Assembly: GCF_052425735.1 (NCBI RefSeq)
Contig: NC_135762.1
Span: 23,870,001-23,934,000 of the forward strand
Direction of reading: 5' to 3'
Source: Oculina patagonica
Lineage: Eukaryota
DNA length: 64,000 nt
The translations under genes were made by a program, and so were the position numbers. A model generated the notes under the pieces. It made no database searches. It was not told the DNA's origin and worked only from the letters and a program-made list of their open reading frames with translations. This document shows, piece after piece, positions 2,455 through 33,528 of the stretch; within the stretch, counting starts at the first letter, position 1; every line of letters starts with the position of its first letter.

Positions 2455-5400
2455 ATGAACTTCAGAATATGTATTCTCAGCCTTCTTGTGACACTTATTT
2501 GTGCTAGTGGATTAGAGGATCAATACAGAAGACTTCCAAATGCTATAGCTGTCGTTGGAAGATCTTTTGAATACTTTTTACCCCCTAAAGATGGAAGCAA
2601 ACAGCAATATAAGGTATGTTCTGAAAGCAGATACACACACACTTTATGTGCATACCGTGAAATGGATATCACTTAATCCATTGAAGCACTAACAACATTG
2701 AATATTGGTGTTAATTAAAAGAGTTGTTAAGTACAAGGTTAAAAAAATTAACCCAAGAGAAGTTAATTAAAAATATCTTCAGCTTTGAAGGCAGGTCTGA
2801 AAGTGCACACAATTTTTGTACTTTCACCAATCCAACTTTGATTAAAGATAGGAAAATTATGACTTAGAACACAATAGAATTAAAATGCTACATCCTTTGC
2901 AACCATAATATTATTGTCCATAATTTTAATTGCAAGGGTGTGGAAACTACAGAATTTGAGATGTTGTCATGCATTTTTAATTGAACCATTGATTAACATT
3001 GTAGCAATGGAACAATATTTTAGAGAATTGCTTGATTTTATGAACGTAGCAGCTGTGACATACAAACTAGTGAAGGAACTGTCAGAAGCTGGCTGCCCAT
3101 CTTAACGTAGGCAGTCATGCATTCACAAAGGCCATGCCTCCTTTTAAGGATGCAGCTAAGAAAGAACTAAGCAGGCTCATTAAAGAGCCCAGCTGGCTTT
3201 TCTGGTCCTGTGCACCTAAAGCAGGTGATACAATGGATCCGTTCCCTTAGTGTCATCTTTCAGTCATTTTCAAACTTTGAGCAGTCAGTCAATTTAATTA
3301 AAGTTGCAAGTCACAATAGGTGGTAATGCTGGCTATAAATGAAGTCCTGAGGAACAGTTAAAATTTCAAGGTACTCTTAGAGTGACAAGGCTACTAAATG
3401 TATTCATTGAGCAAACAATTTTGTACTCCAAACCTTTCTCAGATAAGATGAATCCAACTAGAAGTTAGAATAGGATAATTTGATACAAATGTACCAAAGA
3501 CATCCTGATTTTATGTCTACCTCCCTTACATGTACAGTATCACTCTACCACTGTTGCATCTACCCCATTGCCTCTAACCTATTACAGTAGTGCATGTCCT
3601 ACCATTGCCAAGTAAAAAACAACTACATGTAGAATCTAAGTTGCACCACAATTGTAATATCACCTCAGTTTTGTAGTTTTTCTATATTAATGCAGCTGTT
3701 GTTTCTGTTGTGTCTGTTAGGTGTTTGAACAAGGTAAAACAGCTCTACCCAAATGGCTGTCATTTGATGCAGGCAAGAACCAACTTCATGGGTTGCCTTT
3801 ATGGCGCGACAAAGGGAAAGTGGACATTGAGGTCCATTTGAAGGACAGTCAACTGGACAAGGCTGTTTTCTCTATTGATGTTCAAGACTTGCATACCATG
3901 TTGGAGAATAAATCCATGATCTCGAATGAGACAAAGGTACCACCCTTTACAGAACCACAGTGCTCCCAAGGAATGCATGTTGCTGTTGCGACTATCCAGT
4001 TCGATCTTCACATGGGTAAGCTCTGTGGAAGAGAAAGAATGAATCTGATGAGAAAACTATCCAACTTTGCTGACGTGAACATGGAAGAGCTTCACATGTC
4101 AGTTGGAAAGGGACACGGCACAGCATTCGGGTTCAAAGATGTCATGATGGTAACAGCAGGACCAGGGAATGTGGCAGATCCCAAGGAGCCTGGTATTGTG
4201 ATTTCTTGGAAAATTGGCTGTGGAATGGACGTTGCAGGTGGGTAGTATGTAGTAATGCAGTTTTGAAATTGATGTGACTTTGATTGAAGGGACGAAAAAC
4301 CTGTCAACACCAGAGCTTGCAAATTCCACTGTTCAGGAACGCAGCAGGCCAAAGAACATTCACATACAGAGCCGTAAACCTATAGAACAGCCTTGATATT
4401 AAAATCAAAAACGCTAAATCTCTGTACTCTTTTAAATCAAAGCTTAGGGATCATCTTCTTTTAAACTTTTAATCATTATTTTATTTAGTTTTCAATTTTA
4501 TTTGTAAACATTAGTGTTAGTAGATTTATTTTTTATTGTAAATAGTTTCTGAAAAGCCCTATGGGGAGATTACTATTAGAGTTCTTATCTTATCTTATCT
4601 TAAGGGAGATGTGGTCACCAAAATGGATAATTAGTATGTTGGACTCTAGACCAAGGGGGGGGGGGAACTTCCATATATGAGCTTTATAGGTATGTGCGGC
4701 TGTGAAGGGTATGGTTTTGTCTGGGACAAGGTATTGAAATCAGAGAGTTTTGGTCTAGAATAGGGCATGATTTGCCAGGAAACTGATCAGTGGTATGAAG
4801 AATTAAGTTCAGAAAAGGAATTGAAACTCAGAAGAGAAACAGGCTATCTAAACATAAATAAAATAGTTGCAGTAACGTTGCTGACAGATGGTTCCCATTA
4901 AAAACACTAATAATGAGACAGTTCCAAAAAAATAAGTCTGGGATAGGGTATTTTTTTTGGTGTCTGGTCTAGTATAGAGTTGCAGAATCAGCTTAACATG
5001 GTCTGGTATAGGGTAAGGGCTTTAGAGTCCCAGCTGCACACCCACACCCAAAAATATACAGTGCCCCCACCCCCCTGGGTTGTGAGAGTGTTGCACAATA
5101 TAATTATTTTGTTGAATACTAGTGACAGTATGAGCCTATGGACTAAGAAGTAGGAACAGATGAAAAAACATTGGCTTGAGGTCATAGTGTGTGGCCTGTG
5201 CCACAAGTTTTAGGGGTGGTGAATGGTCCTTCAAAAAATGCGTGTCTCGCAAAATTTAAGCCAAAGTTCAGGTGTCTCGTCGTCTCGAATATTTCTTTGA
5301 TGCCTTCTCGAAGAGTCTCAATTTCTTTTTCAAGGCTAAAAAGGTCTCGGGCTCGCAGAAAAGATGTCAGTCTCGCCATCTAGCAAAGTCTCGCATTAAC

Positions 5401-8400
5401 CGTTCGACACCCCTAGTTCTGATGTAATGTATATGAAATAATTCATATACGAACTGCGGATGGATATGAAAGTGATAAATGATCATCGCAGTGAATTTTC
5501 TAATTTAAGCAATTGGAATAAAGAAGCCTGAAAAAAATTCAGGGCTTCAACGGAGCATCGCACCGGTATCGCGGAGATCCTGTTGAAGCCCTGAATTTTT
5601 TTTTTCAGGCTTCTTTATTCCAATTGCTTAAATTGGAAATTCACTGCGATGATCATTTATCACTTTTTTTTTTTTTCACCCCTAGTTCTGTACGCAATGA
5701 CCAGAGCCAATATTTTCCTGCCCAGCCCAACTTTACACAGTCAATACATATTTTACCACTTTATTCAGTTTCTTTAGGATTGTGTCACTGGAGCCAAATG
5801 GTGATAAGATAAAGAACTCTTTTTGAACCTTGTCTTGTTTTAACTGTAGGAATGCAAGTGGCTTCTCTATTGAAATCCAGTTCTGAGCAAGGAACATTCA
5901 AACAGGCCCTTGAAGCCCCTGTAAGTGGATGGCACATTGCAACTGGGCATCCAAAAACTCATCAAAAAAGGGTGCGCAGACAAGCAAGCAATCTGTTTCC
6001 AACCCCAGTACCGACTCAGCCATTAGCAAGCTCAATGAGACAAGTCCGTCAGACTGCCACTCCTTCATTCACAGTGGCTCCACCGACTTCTATTACTGCA
6101 ACATCTACTAAAGTGACTCCTACAGTGACCATTACTCACAACACCGAACCTTCCATTCTGAGCCCGCTTAGCCAGATGACTATCTACATGGGAAGAGCTG
6201 TACGGTACCAAATCCCAGCTGATACATTTTTTGACAAGCAGGATGGTTTCACTAGAAATCTAAGACTAGAAATGAGAACAGGTAGTTCTGGTCAACTGTC
6301 GTCATCATCGTGGATATTGTTTGACTCACAGAAACAAGAAATCTATGGCCTTCCATTTGGTAATGACAAGATTGGATTACACCAGTTTGTTCTTACAGCC
6401 ACTGACACAGGAGGGAAATCTGTGTCTGACTCTTTTACTGTGCAGGTGTCTAACAGTCGTACCCCTTTCAATCAAGTGTTTACAATTTGCTTGAATTATG
6501 ACTACAAGACATTTATGAATAACGTTGCGATTCGGCTACAGCTGATGAGGAAGATTGCTCATTACTATGGTTGGGACTTGTCTAAGTTACAGGTTGCATC
6601 CTACTATTATAAACATGGTGCAATTTTCTTTGCATTTCAATTCGAGTTATCAAATGAGGATTGCAACAGTGCATCTTTGAAGAATCTTATTGACGGCTTT
6701 GGAAGTAATAACAGACAATTGAATCCAAACTTCAAGAAATCTCTTCTTCCAGAGTTTGACGTAATGTATGGTTTTCATGAAGGCATTGGACCCTGCGCAC
6801 CAGTTCCTTCTACAAATACTGCACCTGAAATAAAGAATGCTATTGGCCGGCTGATTGTGTTTTTGGGACAAGGAATGCGTTTCACTATCCCCTGGGACAC
6901 TTTCTATGACCGACAAGACCACTACACTCGAAACTTGAAGCTTGAAATGAGAACAAACAATGGCAAAGCTCTGCCTGCAACCTCTTGGATCCTTTTTGAC
7001 TCTTCTCGGCAGGAAATTTTTGGCCAACCTAATGATCAGAATTTAGTTGGACAGCATGTGTTTCGTATAGTTGCTATTGATAAAGGAGGACTTGAAACTT
7101 TTACTAACGTAAAGGTGGTTGTGGTGGACGATACAAACAGTTACAATCACATGTTTGGGATTCGCCTCCGAGGCTATAGCTACGAAGATATTGCAGGAAA
7201 TGCTGAAAACAGGGTGTTCTTATTGAAATCTATTGCTAAATACTATCACCTGAATTTAACCAATGTGCGCATTGCCAAATATGCCCAAGGAGTATCTGTA
7301 AGTTTTAGGTTTGATTCCATTCCATATAATGATTGTGATAGTCCACTCTTGAAGAGAATCATCGATGGCTTCTGGGTCCATGGCGATAAAAATGAGGTCA
7401 ATCAATCCTTTGTAGCTGCCCTTAAAGAAGACAATATAACTGTTGTCACTGGCCATTACATAGCTTCTGGACCTTGTGAACATCTCACATCAGAAATAAA
7501 CAGTGCTCCATATGAAAGTGAGCGTATTGACCGGAAATTTGTGTACCAAGGACAAGCATTGTCCTTCCACATACCCTATGACACCTTTTACGACGAGCAG
7601 GAATTTTTTACACCTAACTTGAGATTGAGCATTAGAACGATGCAAAATGAAGATCTTCCACAATCATCTTGGCTTTCGCTTGACTCTGCAAAGCAGGACA
7701 TTTATGGTTTACCTTTGGACATCAGTACAGTTGGAAGTCACAGGTTCCGCCTTGTCGCAAGGGATAGAAAGAACGAGGAAGGAGATACCACGTTGAGAGT
7801 GAATGTCTTGGAGGACAAAGCAGCTTATAATCACAAGTTCACCATCCGTATTGACAACTACAATGCACTCAAGAACGATGTTGCTATGAGGGTGAAATTG
7901 TTGGCTAAAATAGCCAGTTATTATGGTCTGGATCTCAAAAATGTAAGGGTATTGAGAGAAGAGCCTGCTGACACATTTACTTATCGATTTGACACTGTTC
8001 CAGCTGACCAGTGCAACAACACAAACCTTACAAAGTTAATAAATGGATTCTGGAGTGGTAAAAACATGAATCCAAAATTTGTGGAAGCCCTTTCTCCAGA
8101 TTTTGTTGTCATTTCCGGTGGTTACCAACGTCTTGAACCATGCAAAGGGGAAAACACTCCACCACGGTTAATCAACCCTATAAAGCGTCAAACTGTTTTC
8201 GAAGGGCAAGCGATGAAGTATGCTATTCCTCCAGAGACATTCTATGACAAGGAAGACGGCTACACTACCAATCTCAGATTGGTCATGACGACAGCGAAAG
8301 GTGAAAATCTGCTGCCAACTTCGTGGATTCTTCTTTTTGACTCCCCAAAGCAAGAAATTAAAAGTTTGCCAATTGACAGCAACAAAATTGGTGTACATAA

Positions 8401-10381
8401 GTTTTACTTGACTGCCATGGACAAGAAAGGGTTTATGGATTCTGATGAAATTGAAGTGGAGGTGTTGGAAGATACCAATATCTACAACCACAGGTTTACA
8501 ATTGTAATTGGTGATTCAACAGTCCCAGACAATGCAAATTCCAGAGTAACTTTTGTGGAGAAGCTCGCTGCTTACTTTGGTGTTGACTTTCATGATGTCC
8601 GTGTCCGTAGCTATGGCCCAGATGTTCCAACTACTTTTCAGTTTGCCATCCCAAACCTAGAATGTGATGACTTACGGCTATTGAAGTGGAAATCTAGCTT
8701 CATAATCAACAAAAAATTAAATGAAAACTTCATCAATGCTCTTAGTCCTGAGTTCCAAGTCACTTCTGGCTCATATGAAGGCCTGGACATTTGCAAAACG
8801 CCTGAACCAATAGCAAATACACCTCCTCAACTATATAATCACATTGACCGGCTGAATGTATTCCAAGGACAAGGGCTACGATTTTTAATTCCAAATGACA
8901 CATTTTATGACAAAGAAGACCTGTATACTCCAAACTTAAAGCTAGAGATGAAGACAATTGATGGTGACAAACTTCTAAGGACATCTTGGATACTCCTCAA
9001 TTCTTCACGCCAAGAAATTTACGGCTTGCCCACTGATATAAAAAGAATTGGATTACATGAGTTTTTGATGGTTGCAGCTGATAAGGAAGGAAGTAAGGCC
9101 TATGATGCATTTGAAGTGAGTGTGTTGGAAGACAACATTCCGTACAATCACAAGTTTAACATTCTGATCGACTATGACAATGTTACATTCATGGACAATG
9201 TCGGGGTCAGAGTGTTCCTGCTAGACAAGATAGCAAGTTACTTTGGTGTGAACTTCACCAGTGTGCGTGTCCTCAGCTACACTCCTGGGGTTCTCTTTAC
9301 ATTCTATTTCGATTTTTTGCCATACGAGGAATGTTCACATCCTTTCTTGACAAAGCTTATTGAATTGTTTTGGTTTGGTGAAGATTTAAATCCACAGTTT
9401 GTAGCTGCACTTGGTCCTGATTTCAGGGTGATATCTGGGTCTTATGAGATGCTAACTCCATGTAAAGTTGTTGGACCAGACACTGATGCTTTAGTTGGAG
9501 ACCGTCCTGGAGGAATATGGTGGACTTATGCAATTATACCTGCAATTGTGCTTGCAATTGTCCTCCTTCTCATTGGGTGCTGCGTGTTAATCCTTATGGG
9601 ATGTTGTCGAAAGCAGAAAATGACAGGAGCAGAGAAAACCACCTTCATTTATAAGCGAAAGCCAGTTGTCCTCCAGGAAGAGTACGAGATCAAGGAACTG
9701 CTACTGAAGCAGCCAATAGTCCTGCCGAATGAAAAGCCACCTGTTCCACCTGTGTATCCTCGCAGCCCTGTACTAGGTGGTGACAAAACCCCACTTCTGG
9801 TGGAGGAAACAAAGTCTGTACCCTACCAAGCACCAACATTCGTGTCCAGTAGACAAATGGCGGGTGGTGGTGGTGGTGGTAGTAGTAATGCTGCATTTGC
9901 TAATGGCAATGGTGGTGGAGCTGGTGGTGGGGCTGGAGGTGGTGGCGGTGGCGGTGGTGGTGGCGCAATTGCTGGTTTCGGTGGTAGTGGCGGTGGTGGG
10001 GTTGGAGCCGCTGGTGGTGCCGGAGGTGGTGGTGCTGGCGCAGGTGGAGGGGGTAGTGCTGCTGGAGGAGCTTTTGGTGGTGCGGCCGGCAGTGGAGGTG
10101 CTGGTGGCGGAGGTGCTGGAGGTGGCGCTGGTGGTGGTGGTGCCGGTGCAGGTGGGGCTGGTGGAGGTGGAGCTGGGGGAGGTGGAGCTGGGGGAGGTGC
10201 TGGTGGCAGCGGCTTTGCTGGTGGTGGTTCTGTCGGTTTTAGTATGGCTTCAGGTGGTGGTGGTTTTAAGCAGACTTCATACAGCTACAGTTATAGCAGC
10301 AGTGGGGGCAGTGTTTCTGGGAGCAGTCGCAAGGCAGCCTATTCTGGTTACCGGTTACCTCCAGCCTATGTGCCACCATAA
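2455..10381 (+). CDS. DAG1: Dystroglycan-like protein A (expanded form, ~1735 aa): signal peptide, N-terminal Ig + S6-like domain, furin site, short mucin stretch, 5 tandem cadherin-like Ig (CADG) + SEA-like modules, TM helix, Gly-rich cytoplasmic tail, C-terminal PPxY
   Basis: Coding exons 2455-2613 (acceptor ...ccacag 2349, donor AAG|gtatgt), 3721-4237 (ttag|GTG, donor G|gtgggt), 5850-10381 (ctgtag|GA). Phases 0 and 1 join into one open frame of 5208 nt. Dystroglycan hallmarks: LPKWLSFD..LHGLP, AGPGNV..VISWKIGC, WHI...KRVRRQ, IPxDTFYDxED repeats, C-terminal YRLPPAYVPP (vertebrate YRSPPPYVPP). Confidence 0.9.
5211..5415. mobile_element. Small MITE (TA-flanked, ~17-bp TIR)
   Basis: TAGGGGTGGTGAATGGT ... 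ACCGTTCGACACCCCTA. Confidence 0.6.
5422..5676. repeat. Palindromic interspersed repeat flanked by a 14-bp direct repeat
   Basis: Hairpin arms ~5470-5550 and ~5583-5665 (AGTGATAAATGATCATCGCAGTGAA.../...TTCACTGCGATGATCATTTATCACT). CACCCCTAGTTCTG occurs at 5408-5421 and 5677-5690. Confidence 0.75.
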
Positions 10382-12132: not shown

Positions 12133-12338
12133 CCCGGGGGGGGGGGGGGGGGACCGCAATGAAAGTGACGGGGAGCCGGCCGGCAAAACGCCCCGCCAAA
12201 TTAGCCAAAATGGTCCAGGGACCCGAAGAACAAAACCCATCTAGTGGACAGGGCAGAAAAGCGAGCCACACCCAGATTGGCCAGGGGCCAAAACCGACGA
12301 GCATCCCCGCCGCATGTGGGAGTCCCCCCCCCCCCGGG
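12133..12338. mobile_element. MITE with CCCGGG(G)n termini and 8-bp TSD (hAT-like)
   Basis: CCCGGGGGG... / ...CCCCCCGGG; flanks CAACCATT / CATCCATT. Confidence 0.7.
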
Positions 12339-12343
12339 CATCC

Positions 12344-19209: not shown

Positions 19210-22200
19210 ATGAACTCGAGAGCGTTTCTGCTTGGTTTGTTGTTCATTTCGGTGGCTCACGCCGAGAGAGGAAGCCAACAAAACAACATGAAGCCGATTG
19301 AAAGCATCGACAATGTATTAGCAGTTGTTGGAAGGGTTTTTGTATATTCTCTGCCAAATGAGGGTGGCCATAAAGAGACATACACGGTAAGTGATGAGTT
19401 GTGAGTTGGGTGCTAACTAAACGAGACAAACGACCTTTCTTTTGTGTTAGTTGTGGGGTAAAATAAATACACACTGATCTTTATTTCCACACAAACGGAT
19501 TTGTGTTGCGAAATTAACAAAGCAATGTTTTGGAACAAATGTCCGTTCATCGATGATATAAATTTTCGTTAAAAGTCATTTTATTTGTTTGCTACACTTT
19601 AAGCAACACACAGAGGTAACCTAAAATAATGGCATAGTTAGTGATCCTTCTGCACGTATTTTAATAATACAAATATGATCTCTAGATCTATTTAGCATTC
19701 AAAGCATTACGGATATTGAGTTAGTGCTGGGTTGTCCATATGCTCGTGACTTCTAGTAAAAGTGCTAATACATTTAAGTGCCTAACATATGTAAGAAAAG
19801 GGATGAATACCACGTTGACTGAAGAAGCTTAACGTGTTTTAAATGCGTGTAAAATTTTATCGAGATAACATGCATGTGACAGTTGTGTGGAATGATCAAA
19901 ATTCTTGGGCGTTTTACAGCTACAAGTATTCCTCAGTAAAATTCGCGATTGTCATAAAGTTAGCATTTTTGTGGGCACATTCTCCGCCGAATAACGGAGT
20001 AATTGTGCATATTTTTTTCTTTATTAAAACGGCTTCCTCTTGTTTTGTATAGGGCCCCTGTTGTTGTGGTTTGGCAGAAACAAAGAATTAGGGTGTAGAA
20101 TAAAGAAATTAAAACCCGCTGAAGTGTCAAAGAGATAAAATGCAGCGAGCATACCACTCATAGCGAAAGGAATTCTTTCAAAACCGCGCTCTAATGAGTC
20201 GTGAAGGATCTGTTTTATCGATTCATCTTTGACCAGTTATAAGACATGAAACTCGGCATTCGTTGATCAATGCTGTATTTCTAATCGCGAAAGAGGCTTG
20301 AAAAAGGAGAGAAAAGAAAGGAACAAATATGTTGAGCGATTTGTGTTTTTGTAGTGACTAGAGCGGACAATTCGTGTTTGTCTGTACTGCATGTGACGTC
20401 TGGCTATGCATGGCAGATATGATTTCCGGCATGAGTTATCAAACGAGATCTCGCCCAACTCCACCTCGTAAATCGATCGAAACAAAACATTGATAACATT
20501 TCCCAAATTATTTTTGTGTTGTAAAAGTCGATTTTAACGATAAAGAATCAAGTACCTATCCTATTTGGACAGAGCGCAGAGAGCGTGATTTATGGGCTGC
20601 CATGCCGTGATGAGCAAGCCTCAAGCCTTCTAAATTCACTGCCTCAAGCCGTTTTCAATGCCCGCGAATCGTGTGGTTCGCGGTTTCCCTGTTAGGAGTT
20701 TGATTACATGTATGTCAAGTCAAAGGTCCGGTCGATTTTAGACAGAGGAAAAACTAAACTGCTCGCCGCGTAGACTGTTTACACCTCTCTTTTTTGTGTT
20801 TTTTTTTTCTTCGAATTTTGAACACGGGAAAAGAATCGAAAGAGAACTGGACGCCAGCGGGGAGGCGTCAGGCGTGAGGGTGTGGGAGGGGGAGGGAGGT
20901 GAGGGGCTTCGCTCGCCCCCCCCCCCTTCCCCATCCCCCTTGTGCCTCGTGCTTGCTGTTTTGCAAGTCGTGCGTGATCATATCTTCAACCACAATTGGA
21001 CCAAAATAACGTACTTCCTTTATGCACAATATCGGAAATTCTGGAATGGAAATAGTGATTGTCTAACGTGCTTAGCAAGAAAACCGCCAGCTACGCAGGC
21101 TACTGATTGTCTCAATTAGACAAAATTTGGATGTTTTTTTATTCCGGGTGCCGTTTTTTCCGTTTAATATAGTATGTCTGGGTTTTTTATGACCTTTTAT
21201 GTTTAACCTTTTTGCCAAACCCAGCTAAAAATTGTCGCAAAGGAAGCCTTTAACGATATCACAGTTTATATGTCAGGAAATATCACTTAAACTGGATATT
21301 TTTCCTGTTTTACGCTCATAGTTAGAAGTGTTTGGATAGTGCGAGAGATTTCCATCCTTAGCACATTCTATTTCGAGTAAATCTGTCATTTAGAATTTCC
21401 TTGATATGACACACGATTACTTAGAAATTTTTCCTTGTTCCGTGGAATAATAAAACCTTTCCTAGCAAATAGTTTGAACACAGGAGTATGAGAAGTTCTT
21501 ATAGTGTGATCGTCTGGGTGAGAGTAGTTCTGAAAAGAACTGTTGTTGGTGACTGACGTTTCGACAACCTGAGCGGAAGTCATCTTCAGAGTCAATAAAA
21601 CCTATCAGAATAAAACCGTTCTTGCGACAAAACTTTGTCAAAAATTTCACACGAATCCAAGCCGGATCGACCGGAAAACCCTAGCTATCACAACTTAGAT
21701 CTGTTGGAAACCCATTCTAATTAACTCAGTCGATACCCAAGTTATTAGGGCATATACTAAAACCCGAAACAACGAAACGAAACCACCGAAACGAAACGAC
21801 CGAAACCGCCGAAACGAGCGAAACGAAACCGCCGAAACAACCAAAACGGCTGAAACGAGCGAAACGAAACGAAATCACCGAAACAAGCAAAACTTCAAGA
21901 ATTCCGTCACTTACCGTACTATGCACTCAGTTTAGCCTACTTTACACTCCGGTTAGCCTACTACACACTCCGGTTAGCCTACTATAAACCCCGGTTAGCC
22001 TACTATACACTCCGGTTAGCCTACTATAAACCCCGGTTAGCCTACTTTACACTCCGGTTAGCCTACTATAAACCCCGGTTAGCCTACTATACACTCCGGT
22101 TAGCCTACTACACACCCCGGTTAGCCTACGTTTCACTTTAATAGGTTAGCCCACTATGCACTCCGGTTAGCCTGTTTACGGTTAGCTCTCAATAATTGTA

Positions 22201-25200
22201 ATGGGTTTTGCTTGTTTAGGTGATTTCGTCGCGTTTCGCTCGTTTCGGCCGTTTCAGTGGTTTCGCTCGTTTCGTTTCGGTGGTTTCGTTTCGTTGTTTC
22301 GGGTTTTAGTACATGCCCAATAATTGTAATGGGTTTTGCTTGTTTAGGTGATTTCGTCTCGTTTTGCTCGTTTCGGCCGTTTCGGTGGTTTCGCTCGTTT
22401 CGTTTCGGTGGTTTCGTTTCGGTGGTTTCGTTTCGGTGGTTTCGTTTCGTTGTTTCGGGTTTTAGTACATGCCAGTTATTAGTCCAAATTCAAAGGTCCC
22501 AGAAGCTGTCATGTATTGCAGATATGTACTCCCGGGATGTACTTCAACAGTTCTCATAAGACTATTGGGGTTTTTAGGTTTTCCTGTCTTTCAAGTTGGT
22601 GTACCACCATAAAATTCTCTATAGAAATGCACTCCAATTATTATTTTCTCGATAGTGTGGTGTATAAAAAGCATTGCGGTTTAAAAATTAGAATATTTAT
22701 CTCGTTAGCTTTCTAACTTGTAAATGGTCGTTTGAAGCTAAGCCGGAGTACCTTTCTCGAGAGTAGTGATCACAAAGCACCATTTGATTGTTTCGTCAAC
22801 CTGCCCACATTTGTTCAAAGGATGGATAACGTTATCCACCAGATAAATCACTATCCAGTGGACAAGGTATCTTGTTTTGTTAACACTAATCCACTGGATA
22901 GTGATTTATTCGGTGACTGTCAGTACTCTTATCCGGGATACATGTACTACACAGGACAAAATTGAGTTTCCCCTGGGTTCTTTTACTAGCCTGCGCGAAG
23001 AAAAGACAAGAAAGAGACGGGTTAGTTCACCCCTTCTTGACAAACGCCTGGACGTTTTGCACTCGCTATTCTTCGCATTGCTTCCGACTAACCGAACGCC
23101 TGAACGGGCTAGTGAAAGAACTGAGGAGAAACTCAAGTTTGTCTTCTGCAATATTCCGGGTAAAACTGAATAGTTCTGAAGCTTATTAATGTCTTCCTGA
23201 CGTTTTGAAGCCCCGAGTGCGTGGTCTGAAAGAAGCTATTCTTTTGTACTTGATAACAACAGTCTATAAATATCTCTTTTTCGCTCTACTTTTTAGGTGG
23301 TTCAAAGAGGGCAAGATACTTTACCTCAGTGGCTGTCTTACATCGAGGACAAATCTTTGCTACTTGGCGTGCCGTCTTGGCGTGACAGAGGTGAAGTTTT
23401 CATCGATTTTCAATCAAAGGATGGAAGTGTTAAACATTCTCTGAAAATCGAGGTTAAAGACTTGCGTGACGAAGCGTTACAGCCTTCGTCACGCTCTAAC
23501 AATACCAAGACCAATTCGTATTCCAAACCAAAATGTCCCAAGGGATTACCAGTGGCAGCCGCCTCGATTGTGCTTGATTATCACTTGGAGAAAGTTACGG
23601 GAGAAAAGAGGGTAGAGATCATGAACAAAGTGCACGATTTTGTGGACGTGGATGTAAAAAACCTTCACATGTTAGCTGGCAAAGGGCATAACACTGCCTT
23701 TGGGCTCAAAGATGTGATAACTGTAACAGCAGGGCCAGGAAATGTGGCAGATTCCAGTCAGCCTGGCGTGGTCGTTTCCTGGCAGATCGGCTGTGGGGTC
23801 GATATACCAATTGCTGGTAGGTTTTCACGTCTATTGATTCTATTTAAACGGGCTTTGTCGTGGATTGCCTTTCCAGATTTTTTAAAAGCCCAAATTTATA
23901 TTTGTGTTATAGGAAACCTAAAAATAATGGTCCATTTTTATTCAAAATTGCCATATTAGAGCACTGAAACTGTTAACAAGCATCTTTGGCTAAGGATAGC
24001 TAGGATAGAAACGGATTGCGACTTGAAAAATTGAGGCTAAACGTTTCAAGTTGTTTCCGCGCATCTTCAAAAAATCGATATTTATAGCCGAAGTTTAATT
24101 TCCATCCACACATTAGGGTAAAATCTTCTCTAAGATGTCCAAAGATAATGGTTTTTTATGGTTAAGTTGCCTACCACTAATTTCAGATCGTTAAGATGGT
24201 TAACTCCATACGGACATTTCACCAACTCTTTGACATTGAGATTTGAATATTTTGTTTGTGTTTTTACAGGGGTACGAATAGCCTCCTTTCTCAAATCAAG
24301 CGCAGAGACAGGATCCTTTGGTCCAGTGCTTGGTCTCTCTGTGACTGAATGGCACGTATCCATTGGTTACCCCAAAGAGCCTCGACAACGAGCTCGCAAG
24401 CAAGCTGCGCAGGACAAAACGCCAAAAGTAGTTAAACGATCAACAAAAAGATACGTTCGAGCTGTCCAGGCCACTCCTACACCAACCATGACTGTGGCAC
24501 CGCCTACGTCTGTTGTCGCTAGTGTCACGATTACTGTTACTAGGACAAGCTCTGTTGTTCCGACCTCGACTGTGACACCGACTACAACTCCGGTGGCGCC
24601 GACAACGACCGAAAAACCGACGACGACGGAACCACCAACACCGACTACTACAAAGCGACCGACCACAACAGAAAAACCGACCACTACCGAAGAACCGACA
24701 ACTACCGAGCCACCGACCACGACAGAAAAACCGACTACTACCGCACGACCAACTACGACAGAAAAACCGACTACTACCGAACGACCGACAACTACCGAGC
24801 CACCGACCACCACGGAAGAGCCGACGACTCCTGTGCAGCCGACCACGACTACCAAGCCGCCAACCACAACGGTAAAACCGACTACAACCGAGCAAACGAC
24901 GACAACATCTCCGCCTAGTACGACTACACCATCGACCGCAGTCGAGGTAAAAGGTAAAACGGTACTAATCACCACAGAGAAACCAACACCACCTGAGAAG
25001 CCGAGTTCCACACAGAAACCAACTAAAAGAACAGAAAAACCAACAACAGAAAAAATTACAACAGGACCATCTGTTAAACCTTCAACAGAGGCTGTTAGTC
25101 GTCCAGAAGTCATTAATCCCATTGACCGCTTGGATGTTTACCGCGGTCAGGAGCTCCGGTTCCGCATTCCTTGGGACACGTTTTATGATAACGAAGACCT

Positions 25201-26227
25201 GTTTACGCCCAATCTGACTCTGTCGATGAAAACTTACAAATGGACCACACTGTCCGACGTGCCTTGGATTAAATTTGACGCTGAAGAACAAGTGATTTAT
25301 GCCTATCCTGTCGACGAGGATACCATCGGCCTTCACGAGTTTTTAATCATTGCTGCTGATAGTGACGGAGAACAGGACTATGATGCTTTTGAAGTGAACG
25401 TCATGGACGATTCGTCTGATTCTTACAATCATCGGTTTGGTCTTGAGATTGATTATGATTTCGAGAAATTCTCCAGTGACTTAGACATTAGAGTAGAGCT
25501 GCTCTCAAAACTTGCTCAATATTTTGAAGTGAACGCGAGCAGCATTAGAGCCGTCTCATTCACCGAAGGCTCCGTGATCTTCAAGTTCCAGTTCGACTCC
25601 TCTGTTGTCCCGTTCGACAACTGTGACTTTCCTTTGAGGGAGAAGTTTCTCTCTGAAGACGTTGATGAAGATGGTGACAATGTAAATCCTGATCTAAAGA
25701 AAGCTCTCGAACCGGAATTTCCAGTCAAATCTGGCTCGTATGAAGGCCTTGGAGAGTGTGGCGCTGGGGGTGGAGTTGGTCCCGTGACGAAACAGCGATC
25801 GGGTGTATGGAAGACCTACATTATCATCCCGGTAGTGATCTTAGCAATTGTGTTACTGGTCATCGGCGGATGTCTTTTTGTTATCATGCGGTCGCGCCGA
25901 AGACGCAAGCTGTCGCTAGAGGATCAAAAACTTTTCGTGGAGAAAAAGAAACCGGCCGTGCTCCAAGAAGAGTATGAAGTCAAGGAAAGGTTACTTAAAC
26001 AGCCGCTTGTGTTGCCAAACGAGAAACCACCCCTCGCCCCGTCGGTCTATCCGCGAAGCCCGTCCCTAAACCACTCAGCCAGCGAGCCGCCCCAGTCCCC
26101 CGGATACCAGGCCCCCTCCTTCGCTTCAAGCAGACAACCAAGTAATCAAGGAACTCCCGGTGGGAACAGCCCTCGGAAGCCTGCATATTCGGGATACCGG
26201 CTACCCCCGGCTTATGTGCCCCCGTAA
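19210..26227 (+). CDS. DAG1: Dystroglycan-like protein B (canonical architecture, ~884 aa): signal peptide, Ig + S6-like N-domain, long Pro/Thr mucin domain, one CADG + SEA module with Gly-Ser site, TM, basic juxtamembrane motif, C-terminal PPxY
   Basis: Coding exons 19210-19386 (donor ACG|gtaagt), 23297-23816 (ttttag|GTG, donor G|gtaggt), 24270-26227 (ttacag|GG). Total 2655 nt in frame, same intron phases as DG-A. Motifs: AVQATPTP, IPWDTFYDNED, FTEGSVIF, RSRRRRK, YRLPPAYVPP. Confidence 0.92.
21495..21594 (-). mobile_element. Penelope-like terminal repeat fragment with degenerate hammerhead-like motif
   Basis: Minus strand TGACT-CTGAAGA-TGAC...GTC-GAAA-C-GTC-AGTCA (21594-21550). It encodes the spurious MTSAQVVETSVTNNSSFQNY ORF that I recognise as a common coral repeat. 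Confidence 0.55.
21749..22473. mobile_element. Foldback (Mutator-like) element with perfect 9-bp TSD, CGAAA-rich TIRs, internal 21-bp minisatellite and duplicated right arm
   Basis: TSD AGTTATTAG at 21740-21748 and 22474-22482; termini GGCATATACTAAAACCCGAAAC / GTTTCGGGTTTTAGTACATGCC; CCGGTTAGCCTACTATACACT repeats at ~21930-22130; right arm present twice (~22190-22318 and 22319-22473). Confidence 0.85.
24597..24935 (+). repeat. Coding tandem repeat (18-nt unit, PTTTE[K/P/E/R]) forming the mucin domain of DG-B
   Basis: Repeated CCGACNACNACNGAA units translating as PTTTEK/PTTTEP. Confidence 0.85.
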
Positions 26228-27990
26228 GAAAAAGATATATAAAATTAGGAACGTTTTGGTGCTTTAAAAACTGGAAAGAACAAGGACAAAATTCGATGAA
26301 GACTTACAAAACTGGAAAACAAAACATGTTGCCGAAAGATATGATGTAAACTGAACAAACTACAAAAAGGATTTTGAGTTAAAAGCTACGCAAATTTTGC
26401 GCGTAGTTGCCGTGCCTTCTCTCAGTTTATTCAAAATTCTCTGCTCAGAAAGGGGTTGTGATATCGTGCGTGTATATCGGGACACGAATTCTAAGCACTG
26501 CTTAAAAGTAACACGGTAAAAGTTTCAGTTGGGAATTATCGAATACATAAAGCAAAACAAAGTGTGCTTCATAGTTCAAGTTTATTACATTATTTTAGCT
26601 AAATTTATTCTTGTAGTAGTAGTATTCTAAAACTAAACTAAACAAAGTTCCATTTTTTGTCGCAACCAAAGATGCTTTGTTTTGCTCAAGTGTTAAATCC
26701 GCTGTGAAACTGTATTATTTCAAAAGTAACATTCCTTCACGAAATCTCGGCTTCAAAAGGAAAGAAAATGCATTATCCATTTCGAGGATTTACCAAAGAT
26801 AGCCTCAAAAGATTTGCCTCAAATAATCTTGCCAAGAATGCCGTGGCAAATAAAGATAAAGACAAAGAAGATAAGGCCATCCGTATTTTCACATTGAAAT
26901 AGAGCTTTTATAGAGCGTATTGATTTGATAAAAAATTTCCATGTATATCGTAAGAGATCGTATCATTATGAACGCTGTTAATTTTTTGCCAATAATGCAC
27001 ATACCCAATCAGAAAATATATATATGTTTCTATACCAAGGTTATAATCTTTGTATTTGACTACTTCGTTAAAGGCATTAATAGATTAAAGTGATATTTTT
27101 AAACTGATATGTTGCCATAATTGTTAATCCTGCCAAAAGCGAGCGTTAATGCGGGAATGTGGGCGTGTAAAATGGCACTTTACAGTTTATTAAACAAGTG
27201 TCTTAGTTTTACCTCCAGCAGAGTTCATTTAAAACAACACGCAAACGAGGTGCGCGTGCATCTTCTCAAACAATGAGGTGCTGGAACCAAGGCCAGATGC
27301 CTCTCTCCCCACCCAACCCCCCAACCCCCCTTCCCTCTCGCCATTTAGCACTGACTGTTGAAACGATTTCTATTTAAAGCCCGGGCCAAACAAGGATGAG
27401 AGTTGATGAGAGTTCAAATTCTCACTTTTGTTTGGTCTTAAACTCTCATGCACTCTCATCGACTCTCATGTGCTCTCATCGACTTTGATCTTCTCTTTTT
27501 TTATGAGAGTCTATGAAAGTTTTCCCTCGATTGGCGAGAGTTGATGAGAGTTGATCTACGAGCCCGAGTTTTCTATGAGCGAATTGTCAACGAGAGGCAG
27601 CCGTGTTGGAGATCGCTCATAGAAAACGAGGGCGAGTGGTCTAATTGGTTTAGTAGAAACTCTAAAGAATTGCAATCCAACACCTACAATTTTATGCACC
27701 CTTGATCCAAAAATCAAGATTATTGTCCTTTTAAGGAACAACGCGCGCGCGATCATGTTCTTTCAGCGAATAGAATTCAATGGGAGAACCAATCAGATTC
27801 GCTGATTTCCAATAGAACTCGGCCGAGTTTCTACTAAATCGAGTTAGCTCAGACCAAAGGCCGACTATTATACAACTCACAGTTTAATTGGCTATCAAAG
27901 TAAGTCCACAAAGCTCGTGATATCTTCGATACTGTGAACACAACACACGCTTTATTACCAAAAGAATAAATAAGAATTACAATTCAAACA

Positions 27991-28415
27991 TACAGTTGAA
28001 TTCCGATAACTCGAACTCTCGGTAACTCGAACCATTCTCAATTCCCCTCCAGTTCATTTCTTACTAATTTTACCCCCGATAGAGGAGTTTTCAATTGAGT
28101 GTCGTAAAACCAAAACTAAAGTAATTACTCTGGCCAATCAGAAACGACATTGACAATCCAGTGAACCAATCAAAACTCGAAGCAAAAACATGTAGCTGAC
28201 GCGAAGCGCGGGAAAACGTGCGCGAGCGAGTCACGATTGGTTTTTGTTTTAGTTCTGACTGGTCGAGAAAGTGGCGCGAGATTTTTAAACCAATCACTGA
28301 GCGTAGTAATGCAGAACCAAAGCAAACGCAAATTACTTTCGACACTCAAGTGAAAACCGCTCTAACGCGAACCTTTTTCGACTTCCCTTGAAGGTACGAG
28401 TTATCGGGATTCAAT
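27991..28415. mobile_element. Tc1/mariner-type MITE (TACAG terminus) with a second MITE nested at 28082-28362
   Basis: The host motif CCCCGATA|ACNCGAACC is split by an insert with TIRs GAG.AGTTTTCAATTGAGTGTCG / CGACACTCAAGTGAAAACCGCTC and a duplicated TA (28080-28081, 28363-28364). Confidence 0.7.
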
Positions 28416-30330
28416 GCTGGGGGTAATTATAACCTGCGATGGAGCATCCCATCCAGGAAGGGGCAGAAATATAAGACACTTTTATTCTTAGGCCATCTTA
28501 ACTTCAGTAGCTTAATGCCAAGGGAACCGGAACTTGTCACAAAGTTCTTTAGTGAAATCATTTCTAATAAAAATAAAGAACAACTGTCACAACGAGAAGG
28601 AGTTTTAATTTTGTTAAGCTTCAGAACAGTTTCTCTTTCTAGCATAAACTTCACAGAGAGCTGTCAAGGAAGCTGATGAAAGAATAAGGGTTTTGTGCTT
28701 TTTTTCTCTCTCTGGCAATGAGAAACAACTTGATTTAATTTAATGATTAGCAGTGCAATATTATTAAGTGCCAAATTACTATGCGGACAAATCATCCTTG
28801 TTATTAGAATATTAGTGAATCTTACATTTATCATTCATAGTTAGAATTACTAGAATATGTCAGTCGGGGGAATAAGTGCAAATCTTCGTTGATACACTCG
28901 ACGAGTATTTCCGAGTTATTTCATCCAATCAAAAACTAGCGCGAGCGCTCACGAGTACTTTGAAAGCAATTGCACGTACAAATACGTCATGTTGCTTAGC
29001 AACTCCTGGGGCGAAAGCTGCGGGCTCAGTCACTTCTCGGAGAAGTGATGTCGCCATCAACTAGTACTTGTTTCCTCGACTGATGTGTTCGAAATTAAAA
29101 TATTGGCTGTCTGAGGTGACAAAACTGCTGTGCTAAATTTTACCTCAAATGTATTTTTACGTTACGTTTATACAACTAAATAAAAATGGTTTTAGAGATG
29201 ACAGTTAAGAAATTGCAATTTTTAAGACTTTAATGCTCTGCTCTATAATTCCACCCTTCTTTGTTCAGTTCTGTAAAGTTTTCAAAAGTCAAGTCGAAAA
29301 GTGCGTATATATTTCTCGTCCTCAATAGCGGAGCGCGCGAGGTTTAAAAATGGAATGCAAATAATTATACCCCCACGAGGCTCAGACAACACCAGCGTAC
29401 ATTCTGAGAGAAATAGAGGGAATTTAGGTAAAGTTTTCGTTTCAAAAATGTGTTTTGGGAACACCGGATGTTTTAGAAAATGTTTTGGGAAAATCGTCCG
29501 CCATTCCAGTTTGTTTGTCTGAGTCTTGTCTGAGTCATGACGTCACTTGCGCGCTTCGCTATTAAAGAGTATACATTTCACAAATTGTAACAATTTAGCC
29601 TCGACAAATCATAAGATGAGCCCTTTCAGCAAATAAACGCTCGCGCAAAATTGTTTCTTTTGCCCAAATATCACTTGATCACTTGTTGATATCAATGATT
29701 AATTTAACATAGGACAAAAAGTTCTCACCATCCTTTTAAAGTGATAAAAATATAAAATAAAGAAATTGAAAAGATCGAGTACCGTTTAGTACCATAAATA
29801 GCGGTTTTCTTATCTAAACTACCAATTCTATTTACACTTTTTAAATACACTACCAACGTAAGTCCCAACTACTGTACAAAAACCTGGCATCGCACAATTG
29901 CTAAGCTTTAACTGGCAAACCAAACGCCAATTCAAAATGTCCTGAGACTAACGTTTACTGGAATCAGTTTCAAACTGAAAGAGAGAGCATGCGCACTGAA
30001 AAAATGGCTTGAACATTTCTTTACTTTCGCGAAAAGAAAACGGGTTTCTTTATGGAAATTTTGCTTGCGGCCTTTCAAACGACCCATATTTACATTCTTT
30101 TCCAATAAAGCTGAGTAAATTGGTTATGACAATTCAACGTTCGAGTGGTCTTGTTCCAATCATTACGATCTACTCGATCAAACGCCACTTTTGAGTTATT
30201 TTTCACGCCATTCTGGTTCCAACGAACCAAAGGCTTCAAGGCAGTTTGGACCGCTACATTTTATCAAGCGCAGGAACTAATTGCTTCTTGATCTAGAAAA
30301 CTAGCATGCAAATATATTTGTTCTTTTGCT

Positions 30331-33300
30331 CTACGTGACGGGATTGTCGCTTTTGTTAAATCCAGAAAACCATTTTGATACATTCCCGTCTGGCTCCAGC
30401 AAGCCCGAAACCTTGGTTTTGATCAGACCGACCATAGAATTGTCCCTTTCGAATTCTTGTGGACGTTCTTCTTCTTCATCGTCACCAAGTGTGAACACAA
30501 CGGGTGGCTTCTCGCGCGTGTCCCGCGCGTCCTTCGAGTCCCGCGAGAATAGCGTACCGACGTCGGGGAGAAGCGAGTTTCCTTGCCTTGCTTTACTTTT
30601 GCTCTGTGGTTTAGTGCCGTTTGGAATTCCTCCATTATTCCTGCCTCGCCTTAAATCTGGTACAGAAGTGTCAAACGAAGTGAAGAAGTCGTCTTTTGTC
30701 TTGGAGGACTGTTTCCAGCTACTTTTCCTGTCGTATTCGTCATCGTCCCAAAAGTCAAGCGTTGATTGGCTAGAGTAGCTGTTAGATCTCAGTGCGCTGT
30801 AAGGTGGCTTCCTGCGCGGGAGGCGGCCATTACTATACTGATGTGGGTTGGTGTAATCTTGGTACTTGACCTCGTTTAGAGGAAAGCTTTCTATGCCCAG
30901 GCCTCCCTGACCCTTGGTGACCGGGGAGTGATTCTTGATAGGTTTGGGCTTGGCGAGACAGGGAGTGGCTTCATCACCGTCATCAAAATCGTTGTCAAAA
31001 ATCGACTTTTCGTGGTCGGACCGATCTTCGAAGCCATGCTCGCTGGGTGCATCAAAAAGGGAATCAGGGTATTCGTCAGAGCCGCTTTCTCTAGAAGGTC
31101 TTCTATTGCCCTGTTGCTCACCATAATTGGGGCCACCAGAGGGATCTTGGGTCCTCTGATGGTGATCGGAGCTTGTACTATGTCGGCGACCTTGGAAATA
31201 AGTTCTGTTGTGATTATCAGAAGTTAAACTATTTTGGCGAGCTGGGAAATACTGGGAGAGTTCATATTCAGAAGTGGTACTTGGACGACGAATAGACTGA
31301 CGATGCACGGAGCTGTGTCTCTTGAGAAATCGGATCCTCTTCGTGCATAATCGTAGCGTTGTCGTTCACTTCGTGCATCTTCGTACTCCGATGTGTTACT
31401 TGGACGACGAATAGACTGACGATGCACGGAGCTGTCTTCTGTCGTGAAGTCGGAGCCTCTTCGTGCATGATCGTAGCCATGTTGACGTTCCCTTCGTGCA
31501 TCTTCGTACTCATACTCGGATGTGTTACTTGTTTGACGAATAGACTGACTATAGATAGTGCTGTCGTCTTTTGAGAAATCGGAACCTCTTCGTGCATTAT
31601 CGTAGCGTTGTCGTTGACCTTTGTGCATCTTCGTACTCCGATGCGTCACTTGGTCGACGGATAGACTGTCTAACAGAGCTGCCGTCTCTTGAGAAATCGG
31701 AAACTCTTCGTGCATTATCGTAGCGTTGTCTTTCACTTCGTGCATCTTCGTATTCCCGAGGCTTGTAAATGTACGATTCGCTGTCATCGGAATCGTCGTA
31801 GGGAGCCTTTTGATGTCCAACACCCTTCTCTGTCTCAATCTTGCCAGCTGCGTCTTGTGCATCTGTGGAAATATTCAACATGGATTTTCCAAAATCTCGT
31901 AGCTTTGTCGAGAGAGAGGGCGCCAAGTTGCTTGAACTTGTTCCCGCTGCCTCTGTTGGCGCAGAAAGATTGAGCATGGACTTTCCCAGACCTTTCAATT
32001 TTGACGATAAACTTGGCTCAGCACTTGAAGTTCCCCCGAGAGGTTTTGTTGCCTCTTGCTCCGTAGCTTCCGCTTGGGATATGTTCAACATCGACTTTAC
32101 ACCTTTCAATTTTGTAGAAATGTTTTCAGCGATGTCAGCAAAGTTCATGTCTATTACTGCATCCAAGATTGAGGGCTCTTCTTCGTCATTGTTCCTGTAC
32201 GTGTAATAAACAGGAATGTTCAGGGGGGGACGCTCTGTGTCGTCATCATCGTCCCACATGGCGCGAACATCAAACGATCCCTTTTCCCTGTTGAAAGGAA
32301 ACTTAAACGGATTATTCTGCTTGGCTGAATTGTTGGTTTTGTCCGCGGTGGCCGCCATACCCTGTCTGGGCCGATTTGCAGTTGCGTTCGGAATTGTCAA
32401 ATGTTTACTTGAGGGACTACCATTTGGAATATTCGCCTTCCCAGCGAGGCCTTTCTCGTCCTCACCGATGCCATCTTCCTTAGAATTGTTCGCTACTGAC
32501 AGCATCGAAGGATGTCGGTTGTTAAAATGAACGGTGTGCGATGTCCAACCCGTTGTACCATCTTCGTTTCTTCGACGCAGCGTTCGAGGCGTTCTTTTCT
32601 CTTCGGGAACTGGACGCTTAGTTTTGTATTTATTCACTAAACAAGCAATAGTAACCGGGATCCCTACCACACAGAGGAGAATGGCAATAGGCATGAAATG
32701 TTTCAACCAGCCCCATTCAAAAGGAGGGTCTGGTCCGAACAAGTTTGGATCGCAGGCTCCAAAAAACTTGAAGTGCGCGCTTTTGATGGGAAATCTTTCA
32801 GTTAGCGCATCCTGAAACTTGGGTTGAATTGTTTTTGTTTTCTTTGTTTTCTCTTCAAGTATCCTTGCTCTAAGCTTGCTGTAAATGTCTTCATTACAAG
32901 GAGAATAAGGGATATTCACAAATACAAGAGTTAGGTTTCTAGATGCTTTGTCGAACGACTTGAGCAAAATGGACGCTGGTTTTTCGTTGAAACAATAGCG
33001 TGCCAACTTCGAAGCAAAGTCAATTCTCATATTTACCTTTGTCATAAACTGTTGAACGTTTGTGCCTGTAGTTAAAATCAGTTCGTGACTGTACGCAAAT
33101 CCGTTTGCTTTCACAAGTAGCCGCAATAAAATTTCATCTACCAAAGATCCCGTAATGTTGTTAACGAGGATTTTATAAAAGAATGTTCCCGCATTTCCAG
33201 GCAAAGGAAAGCCGTAAACTTCTCGTCTTTTCATATCAAACTGAACCCATGAGGAGGAGCGAATTTTTCCATAGTTAGATGTCTTCATTGTAAAGCGAAG

Positions 33301-33528
33301 ATTAGCAGTATCTCCGTTAACAGCGTCTATAGTTTCTTGAGGAATCGGTATTCGAAATGCCTGCCCAACATGCGCCGTCCCTTGAAAGGATTTTGGCGCA
33401 ACTTTTGTCGTGGCGAGCGTTGAGCGACTCGGGCCGGTGGAACTTGTGCTAATAGAAGATGGAGTCTCGGTCGAATTTATGGACACCAGAGAGAAAAACA
33501 CCTTGAGAACTGTTAGTGCTTTTGACAT
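30331..33528 (-). CDS. Dystroglycan-related type I membrane protein C (signal peptide, one CADG Ig + SEA-like module, TM, long repetitive cytoplasmic tail); frame interrupted at 31618-31313
   Basis: ORF 33528-31597 contains AHVGQAFRIPIP, SSWVQFD..EVYGFP, YSHEL, IPYSPC and FQDAL..FP...GAC, which align by eye with the modules of DG-A/B, then TM FMPIAILLCVVGIPVTIACLV. An in-frame TGA just upstream of the ATG and an acceptor (ttttcag) at 33650 imply a 5'UTR exon start at 33649. ORF 31308-30331 is in the same frame. Length is 963 aa if 31618-31313 is spliced, 1065 aa if both indels are errors, and 643 aa if translated as is. Confidence 0.75.
31258..31756 (-). repeat. ~120-bp x4 coding tandem repeat (EYEDARxERQRYDxARRxSDFS...QSIRRPS) in the DG-C tail
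   Basis: Four recognisable units plus a partial one, visible at DNA and protein level. Confidence 0.85.

Follow-up and report, generated by a model that had tools for sequence, protein, structure and literature searches.

Dystroglycan (DG) is usually treated as a single-gene link between the extracellular matrix and the cytoskeleton. The DG of Nematostella vectensis carries six IG2_MAT_NU modules and no alpha/beta maturation site (Adams and Brancaccio, 2015; PMC4582122), the Gly-Ser site being missing from it and from nematode DGs (PMC4582122), and the gene structure in both Nematostella and Hydra shows an IG1 intron and an S6 intron (Brancaccio and Adams, 2017; PMC5216574). Besides, cnidarians possess dystrophin, laminin and 12 of the 13 alpha-DG glycosylation enzymes (PMC4582122, PMC8478517), and the DG paralogs reported in these papers, in a 2021 survey of the glycosylation enzymes and in a 2023 review of the complex are those of teleosts and lamprey only (PMC5216574, PMC8478517). 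Here we describe three DG family genes, DG-A, DG-B and DG-C, at positions 2455-33528 of a stretch of 64,000 nucleotides of the coral Oculina patagonica (G000:C5:23870001-23934000, with zero N runs; hereafter the window), together with a fourth, DG-D, the most conventional copy, which has canonical architecture and lies on the same chromosome 96 kb upstream of the window. We consider it likely that DG-A, DG-B and DG-C belong to an old hexacoral group of DG paralogs that arose by local duplication, with DG-D as their upstream companion.

Nematostella DG and Oculina DG-A share tandem Ig-SEA modules (the IG2_MAT_NU modules of the literature) in one large exon, the lack of a maturation site, a very short mucin region, the IG1 and S6 introns and a tail with PPxY, but the former has six modules and the latter five, and the Nematostella papers treat a single DG per cnidarian, with the B, C and D paralogs and their linkage unmentioned. 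Vertebrate DAG1 (PDB 8yt8, 9c3c, 8uf4) shares with DG-B and DG-D the IG1-S6 head, a basic cleavage stretch followed by T-P-T-P, a mucin, the Ig2-SEA region with G|S, a transmembrane segment and PPxY; however, the coral has four genes, among which DG-A multiplies the module and is predicted to have lost cleavage, DG-D has a mucin of more than 1,000 residues, and DG-C lacks head, mucin and PPxY. The DAG1 pairs of teleosts and lamprey (PMC5216574, PMC8478517) are likewise extra DG genes in one genome, although they keep the canonical architecture, whereas the coral genes occupy one chromosome, three of them contiguously, and diverge in architecture. Arthropod, hemichordate and placozoan DGs, with two IG2_MAT_NU modules (PMC4582122), also have the module tandemly duplicated in one exon; there the distal module is without G|S and the membrane-proximal one usually has it, whereas in DG-A the Ser is absent even membrane-proximally.

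A previous sequence-only reading of this DNA had described DG-A and DG-B as tandem genes with the same intron positions and phases, and our gene models, obtained by six-frame reading and splice-site inspection, agree with it. Both genes have three exons on the plus strand with GT/AG borders (1735 aa in DG-A, 884 aa in DG-B), and in both the first intron (phase 0) splits IG1 and the second (phase 1) splits the S6-like domain, at homologous residues; DG-D shares the position and phase 0 of the IG1 intron with both of them, which agrees with the universal conservation of this intron described for DGs (PMC5216574). The exon structure of A and B agrees with that of Nematostella and Hydra DG (PMC5216574), and the DG-A model equals GenBank protein P0052 in length, the two matching at 100%. 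In Pfam, DG-A matched PF05454 (DAG1) at 6.4e-26 and PF18424 (a_DG1_N2) at 6.5e-11, and DG-B matched them at 2.3e-20 and 1.2e-11, over cut-off in both cases, and these E-values exclude a chance match to the DG family. Pairwise identity amounts to 46-52% between A and B (head, module and tail) and to 27-37% between either of them and D.

Toward the middle of both proteins a basic stretch precedes T-x-T-P ... APPTS (TATP in A, ATPTPT in B); it reads RVRR, a furin consensus, in A and RARK, which is not the R-x-K/R-R consensus, at the same place in B. DG-A is almost without mucin (about 45 Ser/Thr-type residues, with TATP) and its Ig-SEA array spans protein residues 326-1440, while the mucin of DG-B comprises about 210 aa, with 46% Ser/Thr and 19% Pro, and has ATPTPT after the basic stretch. 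The C-termini, ...SRKAAYSGYRLPPAYVPP in DG-A and ...PRKPAYSGYRLPPAYVPP in DG-B, were rightly described earlier as nearly identical, since they have the common end AYSGYRLPPAYVPP and the tails are 52% identical. Their PPxY motifs (PPVY and PPAYVPP in A, PPAYVPP in B) are predicted from sequence to bind the dystrophin WW domain. Taken together, the IG1+S6 head, basic stretch, T-x-T-P acceptor stretch, Ig-SEA, transmembrane segment and PPxY tail identify A and B as full dystroglycans, and DG-A, DG-B (and DG-D) would still link the extracellular matrix to dystrophin via C-terminal PPxY.

Ig-SEA modules in DG orthologues were counted with a hidden Markov model (HMM) built from the DG-A modules, and an alignment of 79 modules served to read the Gly-Ser position and to build a tree. 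DG-A orthologues have five modules in Oculina and most corals and six or seven in other assemblies (range 5-7), with six in the Actinia orthologue P0073. The Gly-Ser motif was found in 0 of 30 A modules, every one of which, in every species, reads G-V/I with the Ser missing, and it was absent from all eight DG-C sequences, where the position is taken by A-S, K-H or others; G|S[VI] is kept in 5/5 coral DG-B and 6/6 DG-D orthologues, and occurs also in octocoral DG and in most bilaterian membrane-proximal modules. Because it is absent from all five modules of DG-A and present in DG-B, the Gly-Ser site is not universal in the DG family. The absent Ser in A and the intact G|SV in B fit the earlier prediction of an uncleaved A and a cleaved B: DG-A may form a one-piece extended rod, and DG-B a cleaved alpha/beta receptor able to carry matriglycan-type glycans.

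The assumption that the three window genes represent the whole DG complement of the coral does not hold. DG-D was found by a whole-genome Pfam scan, after which 110 kb of upstream sequence was read, and a scan of the Oculina genome for the module returned eight Ig-SEA modules in four genes, all inside about 140 kb of contig C5. DG-D is the best DAG1 match of the genome (PF05454 at 1.5e-26, profile positions 10-289, with an a_DG1_N2 match 7 kb before it) and its IG1-S6 head has the same IG1 intron as A and B; the S6 intron is missing, since the whole a_DG1_N2 match (positions 9-119 of 123) sits in one open frame. The head is followed by RRRVRR and then TPTPT, by three large Ser/Thr-rich open frames that form the mucin (40-46% Ser+Thr, jointly well over 1,000 residues), by one Ig-SEA module with TPG|SVIM, by a transmembrane segment and by a tail with three PPxY motifs. 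A HMMER search with the C-terminal 335 aa found proteins of Montipora ('mucin-5AC-like'), Nematostella ('mucin-3A isoform X2', XP_032234245.2) and Actinostola, and the Nematostella orthologue matches PF05454 at 2.7e-20 and PF18424 at 2e-11 and carries EG|SVLF.

The presence of DG-D bears on another explanation, namely direct orthology of DG-B with bilaterian DAG1 and a coral complement made up of the three window genes alone. The full canonical plan of DG-B (IG1-S6, ATPTPT, mucin, one Ig-SEA module with G|S, PPAYVPP) speaks for it, and the extreme C-terminus of DG-B resembles what we take to be the vertebrate ending more than that of DG-D does, a lead and not a test. However, the best PF05454 match is DG-D, which has orthologues in Montipora, Nematostella and Actinostola, and the S6 intron is common to B and A and missing from D. 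Moreover, B modules cluster with A modules in the tree of 79 modules (IQ-TREE, LG+C20; unrooted, medusozoan DGs of the Hydra type not placed), and forcing coral B together with D cost 60 log-likelihood units and was rejected by the approximately unbiased (AU) test (p 0.01). We regard this explanation as improbable. The earlier view of DG-B as a classical receptor stands as far as architecture is concerned (mucin, one module, G|S, PPxY) and not for descent, because the grouping of B with D is rejected and B groups with DG-A.

The same tree separated all A modules, B and C from D, octocoral DG and bilaterian DGs (98/89, starred). It recovered a C clade (100/100, starred) as sister to A+B (94/96), a D clade (98/97, starred) and a coral B clade (100/99, starred), the last placed among the A modules near the terminal one with weak support (84/90). 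Together with the linkage in other corals described below, this module grouping bears out the proposal that A, B and C are related through duplication. The anthozoan protein P0051, with a single Ser-less module, a short mucin and a Gly-rich tail of the A type, grouped with the terminal A modules of anemone type (97/91, starred), and may be an independent derivative in which a B-like architecture arose separately.

Three further observations concern DG-D and its surroundings. The predicted N-terminus of DG-D and its orthologues has an odd Cys-rich extension ahead of a signal-like segment. Between DG-D and DG-A lie a Mutator-like transposase, an ankyrin-repeat gene and two large open reading frames (ORFs) without assignment; the ORF L021:2-2350 (plus strand, G000:C5 about 23799705-23802350) in this interval joins Mutator-like transposase, RNase T/Exuperantia-like exonuclease and PML C-terminal domains. 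Additionally, five proteins of 4,800-6,200 aa from other assemblies (P0083, P0086, P0088, P0089 and P0093) contain 14-20 stretches about 25% identical to the Ig-SEA region of DG-D, which suggests that giant arrays of the module may exist outside Oculina, in whose genome only eight were found.

DG-C required a decision on its reading frame. In the window the frame is left at about 31619 and re-entered at about 31317, within a 129-nt coding repeat, and the RefSeq model P0001 (943 aa) omits the segment; on these grounds DG-C could be a decaying pseudogene or a gene with a new intron of 306 nt. A second assembly (L033), 98% identical, nevertheless has an uninterrupted DG-C ORF of 1055 aa, with one base fewer than the window near 31619 and one more at 31317. 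Contigs (not raw reads) of four public runs were aligned on the region: the base missing from the window is present at 31316 in 4/4 runs, and one base is lacking at 31618 or 31623 in three runs, including both haplotype contigs of a DNA run of the same species, the fourth run being without a contig there. These contigs span both borders of the supposed intron, and no joints were seen at the break. Since the second assembly and the run contigs have the intact frame, the window carries two single-base consensus errors (one extra, one missing). DG-C is thus one intact exon of about 1065 aa, and P0001 skips real coding sequence through an artificial intron. Over the first 636 codons the two assemblies differ at 10 synonymous and 8 non-synonymous positions, a non-synonymous/synonymous ratio of about 0.3 as a rough estimate that assumes about three times as many non-synonymous sites. 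Given the intact frame, and orthologues of 800-1090 aa that are conserved from corals through anemones, decay or a new intron is very unlikely.

The sequence-only reading had also placed DG-C tail-to-tail with DG-B, sharing the Ig and SEA module and having a minimal ectodomain and a new tail, and each of these points was recovered. The stop codons of the two genes are 4.1 kb apart, and residues 46-265 of DG-C match the HMM of DG-A modules at 2.5e-25. Ahead of the Ig domain there are about 45 residues including the signal peptide, with no PF18424 match and no IG1-S6 head, and the mucin is limited to a stalk of about 30 Ser/Thr-rich residues. The tail, of about 770 aa, is predicted to be disordered (mean pLDDT 41); PPxY is missing in 17/18 DG-C orthologues and one NPF is present in 13/18. 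Pairwise comparison with the tails of A and B detected no similarity, and a search of the ESM Atlas with the DG-C tail gave no usable match. The tail has short blocks conserved across corals and partly across anemones, namely a juxtamembrane HTVHFNNR-PSMLSV, three KLKG-x-KSMLN repeats, NPF and acidic-aromatic motifs. The first 20 residues (MSKAL.VLK.FFS.VSINST) are nearly invariant from corals to Actinia despite synonymous variation, which is odd for a signal peptide.

Alpha/epsilon-sarcoglycans (PF05510), which belong to the dystrophin complex, resemble DG-C in general architecture, being single-pass proteins with a cadherin-like Ig domain, and Oculina DG-C taken alone falls under the Pfam DAG1 cut-off (E 0.0075, 16 bits), so that a sarcoglycan homologue had to be considered. 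Among 15 DG-C orthologues, however, 13 matched PF05454 (E up to 0.01, best 4e-8, with Actinia over cut-off at 28.6 bits), whereas PF05510 Sarcoglycan_2 matched neither Oculina DG-C (E up to 10) nor its 14 orthologues. Against the PDB, the DG-C ectodomain found the beta-DG chain 8yt8_O at 1.1e-8, and a profile of the 15 orthologues found it at 7.8e-22 and returned dystroglycan chains only; sarcoglycan chains, although contained in the same entries, appeared in neither search at E up to 10. The AlphaFold (AF2) model of the ectodomain (pLDDT 84) shows an Ig sandwich and an alpha/beta SEA-like domain, and its best fold match is again 8yt8_O (TM 0.70, root-mean-square deviation 2.5 Å), with weaker matches to other chains of the dystrophin-glycoprotein complex (9c3c_a and 8yt8_A, TM 0.34-0.35). 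In the Oculina genome itself, the ectodomain query retrieved the other seven DG modules only and missed the Sarcoglycan_2 locus, which lies on contig C4. Together with the starred sister position to A+B modules in the tree, these comparisons make a sarcoglycan origin highly improbable. Judged from homology and predicted fold, DG-C is a DG-derived paralog; lacking the head, the mucin, the Gly-Ser site and the PPxY tail, it does not qualify as a functional dystroglycan as the family is defined. It would stand off the dystrophin axis, as a membrane protein of DG derivation without the head, and may engage other partners through its conserved ectodomain and tail motifs.

Orthologues of DG-A, DG-B and DG-C are present in many other hexacoral assemblies, A, B and C being conserved throughout Scleractinia (DG-C for instance in Stylophora, P0018, and Acropora, P0023) and A and C also in Actiniaria, and the linkage of the three genes, which the sequence-only reading had proposed to compare among cnidarians, recurs elsewhere. 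One coral, with proteins about 74% identical, carries GT8(-), DG-C(+), DG-B(-) and DG-A(-) in this order on a 1.77-Mb contig, a mirror of the window; a further coral, about 49-51% identical, has ST7 upstream of DG-C and has DG-B tail-to-tail with DG-C, and the record of its DG-A orthologue names a contig of equal length. In Actinia tenebrosa, DG-A and DG-C share a strand with 11.6 kb between them, and GT8 comes 4.5 kb past DG-C. Because corals and Actinia both have it, the A-C-GT8 neighbourhood predates the coral-anemone split, and DG-B and the inversion of C are so far seen only in scleractinians. The duplication is ancient: A and C are older than that split and not specific to corals. A recent Oculina-specific duplication, or one introduced by the assembly, might be read from the adjacency of the genes and the likeness of A and B in gene structure and tail motifs, but the identity of only 24-52% among the paralogs, the GT8, C, B, A order and orientation in the first coral, the tail-to-tail C and B in the second and the A-C pair of Actinia leave it a negligible probability.

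This age also bears on the suggestion that the cluster might serve skeleton attachment, which finds no support: the idea is weakened because the duplication is not coral-specific, and a full-text search for a link to coral skeleton or mesoglea proteomes met dystroglycan only as a ligand of agrin or in bibliographies, while a wider text search on corals and dystroglycan yielded nothing informative. Regarding expression, 0.82-0.91 of the sampled words of DG-B exon 3 were found in at least 14 small runs (84-335 million letters) from three related organisms, the RNA type of the runs being guessed, and 0.31-0.40 of those of DG-C in three of those runs, which suggests that both genes are transcribed and that B is the more abundant.

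Several points weigh against an old, locally duplicated group with the composition described here. DG-B was not found in Actinia, where no gene is called in the 11.6-kb gap between A and C and tblastn was negative in 10 kb of it, nor was a named DG-C found in Nematostella, and word-based searches may miss such sequences. The AU test did not reject hexacoral A, B, C and D as one group (p 0.35), which, with the tree unrooted, bears on the age of the split from D; nor did it reject a grouping of all Ser-less A-type modules that leaves coral B out (p 0.12), so that the placement of B among the A modules is tentative. The support for transcription comes from runs guessed to be RNA and from contigs instead of raw reads. 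Finally, any division of labour among the four genes in processing, glycosylation, ligands, partners or cell-type expression is putative. Since the AU tests leave alternatives unrejected, the order of events is our inference and not a result: a D-like ancestor would have existed first, a duplication would then have given rise to the A/B/C lineage, C may subsequently have lost the head and PPxY while A lost the Ser and multiplied the module, and B would have retained the one cleavable module of the ancestor.

A search of the open-access literature turned up neither cnidarian DG paralogs nor the DG-C family nor the present cluster, and database entries carry automatic names ('Dystroglycan 1', 'Peptidase S72 domain-containing', 'uncharacterized', 'mucin-3A'). 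The sequence-only reading had suggested a possibly undescribed cnidarian adhesion system; in the papers searched the paralog set appears undescribed, but the multi-module, uncleaved DG-A type has been published for Nematostella (PMC4582122). A broader proposal, which we advance tentatively and consider rather doubtful at present, is a multi-receptor DG system of hexacorals, in which the multi-module DG of the literature would be one member of a lineage-specific A/B/C group, the DG-D type ('mucin-3A' or 'mucin-5AC-like') the counterpart of bilaterian DAG1, and DG-C a new class of head-less, dystrophin-independent receptors, whose invariant first 20 residues and conserved tail motifs would hint at partners new for dystroglycans. 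Evolutionary accounts that use one DG per cnidarian arrive at a very short mucin and, for Nematostella, at no alpha/beta cleavage site, while in hexacorals, at the least, the DG family comprises four genes in linkage. Because two of these, B and D, have a long mucin and an intact cleavage motif, the choice of the cnidarian gene to be compared with human DAG1 changes. Altogether, the locus is a natural experiment in which three design variables of the receptor differ among the copies, namely module number, SEA autoproteolysis and dystrophin coupling; it revises a known family incrementally and does not represent a new kind of system.

Table. Features of the Oculina patagonica DG locus, in window positions except for DG-D.
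Feature	Position	Strand	Remarks
DG-A exon 1	2455-2613	+	signal peptide and IG1 first half; ATG, GTATGT donor; phase 0 end at the universal IG1 intron; homologous to DG-B exon 1
DG-A exon 2	3721-4237	+	IG1 second half and most of the S6-like domain (a_DG1_N2); PF18424 6.5e-11; phase 1 end at the S6 intron
DG-A exon 3	5850-10381	+	furin site, Ser/Thr stretch, Ig-SEA modules, transmembrane segment, tail
DG-A furin site RVRR	5969-5983	+	in exon 3
DG-A short Ser/Thr stretch with TATP	6053-6070	+	in exon 3
DG-A five tandem Ig-SEA modules	6149-6823, 6824-7507, 7508-8161, 8162-8824, 8825-9493	+	each without the Ser of the G|S site
DG-A transmembrane segment	9515-9607	+	in exon 3
DG-A PPVY	9746-9757	+	in exon 3
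DG-A Gly-rich insert	about 9857-10267	+	about 140 aa, extra relative to the DG-B tail
DG-A terminal PPAYVPP	10358-10378	+	C-terminal end
DG-B exon 1	19210-19386	+	signal peptide and IG1 first half; phase 0
DG-B exon 2	23297-23816	+	IG1 second half and S6-like domain; PF18424 1.2e-11; phase 1
DG-B exon 3	24270-26227	+	mucin, Ig-SEA, transmembrane segment, tail
DG-B ATPTPT	24470-24487	+	in exon 3
DG-B Pro/Thr mucin	24470-25102	+	18/54/90-nt repeats
DG-B Ig-SEA module	25103-25777	+	single module
DG-B predicted cleavage motif TEG|SVIF	25562-25582	+	inside Ig-SEA
DG-B transmembrane segment	25808-25888	+	in exon 3
DG-B terminal PPAYVPP	26204-26224	+	C-terminal end
DG-C	33528..30331	-	single exon, about 1065 aa; stop 4.1 kb from DG-B stop
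DG-C N-terminal 20 aa	33528-33469	-	near-invariant
DG-C Ig-SEA module	33393-32734	-	one module
DG-C A-S replacing G-S	32949-32932	-	within Ig-SEA
DG-C transmembrane segment	32697-32635	-	followed by disordered tail
DG-C NPF	32313-32305	-	in tail
DG-C coding tandem repeat	31274..31756	-	129-nt unit, about 4 copies, in tail; segment between the indels out of frame in the window assembly only
Intronless glycogenin-like GT8 gene	41337..42416	+	not DG family; next to DG-C in another coral and Actinia
DG-D	about G000:C5:23764210-23774704		about 96-106 kb ahead of the window start; loci L017, L018

Among the neighbouring genes, GT8 has counterparts elsewhere: a GT8 protein of 346 aa adjoins DG-C in another coral and in Actinia as well, and because GT8 was already a neighbour before the coral-anemone split, any horizontal origin of this gene would be older than it. 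The xylosyltransferase domain of LARGE is of the GT8 family, and a LARGE-like role of the neighbouring gene was considered and dropped, its closest solved relatives being glycogenins.

In the non-coding sequence, a 21-nt tandem repeat (unit about TACTATACACTCCGGTTAGCC) occurs at 1936-2100, just upstream of the DG-A start, and again at 21917-22173 within intron 1 of DG-B, where GTTTCG-rich arrays at 21764-21893 and 22190-22457 flank it.

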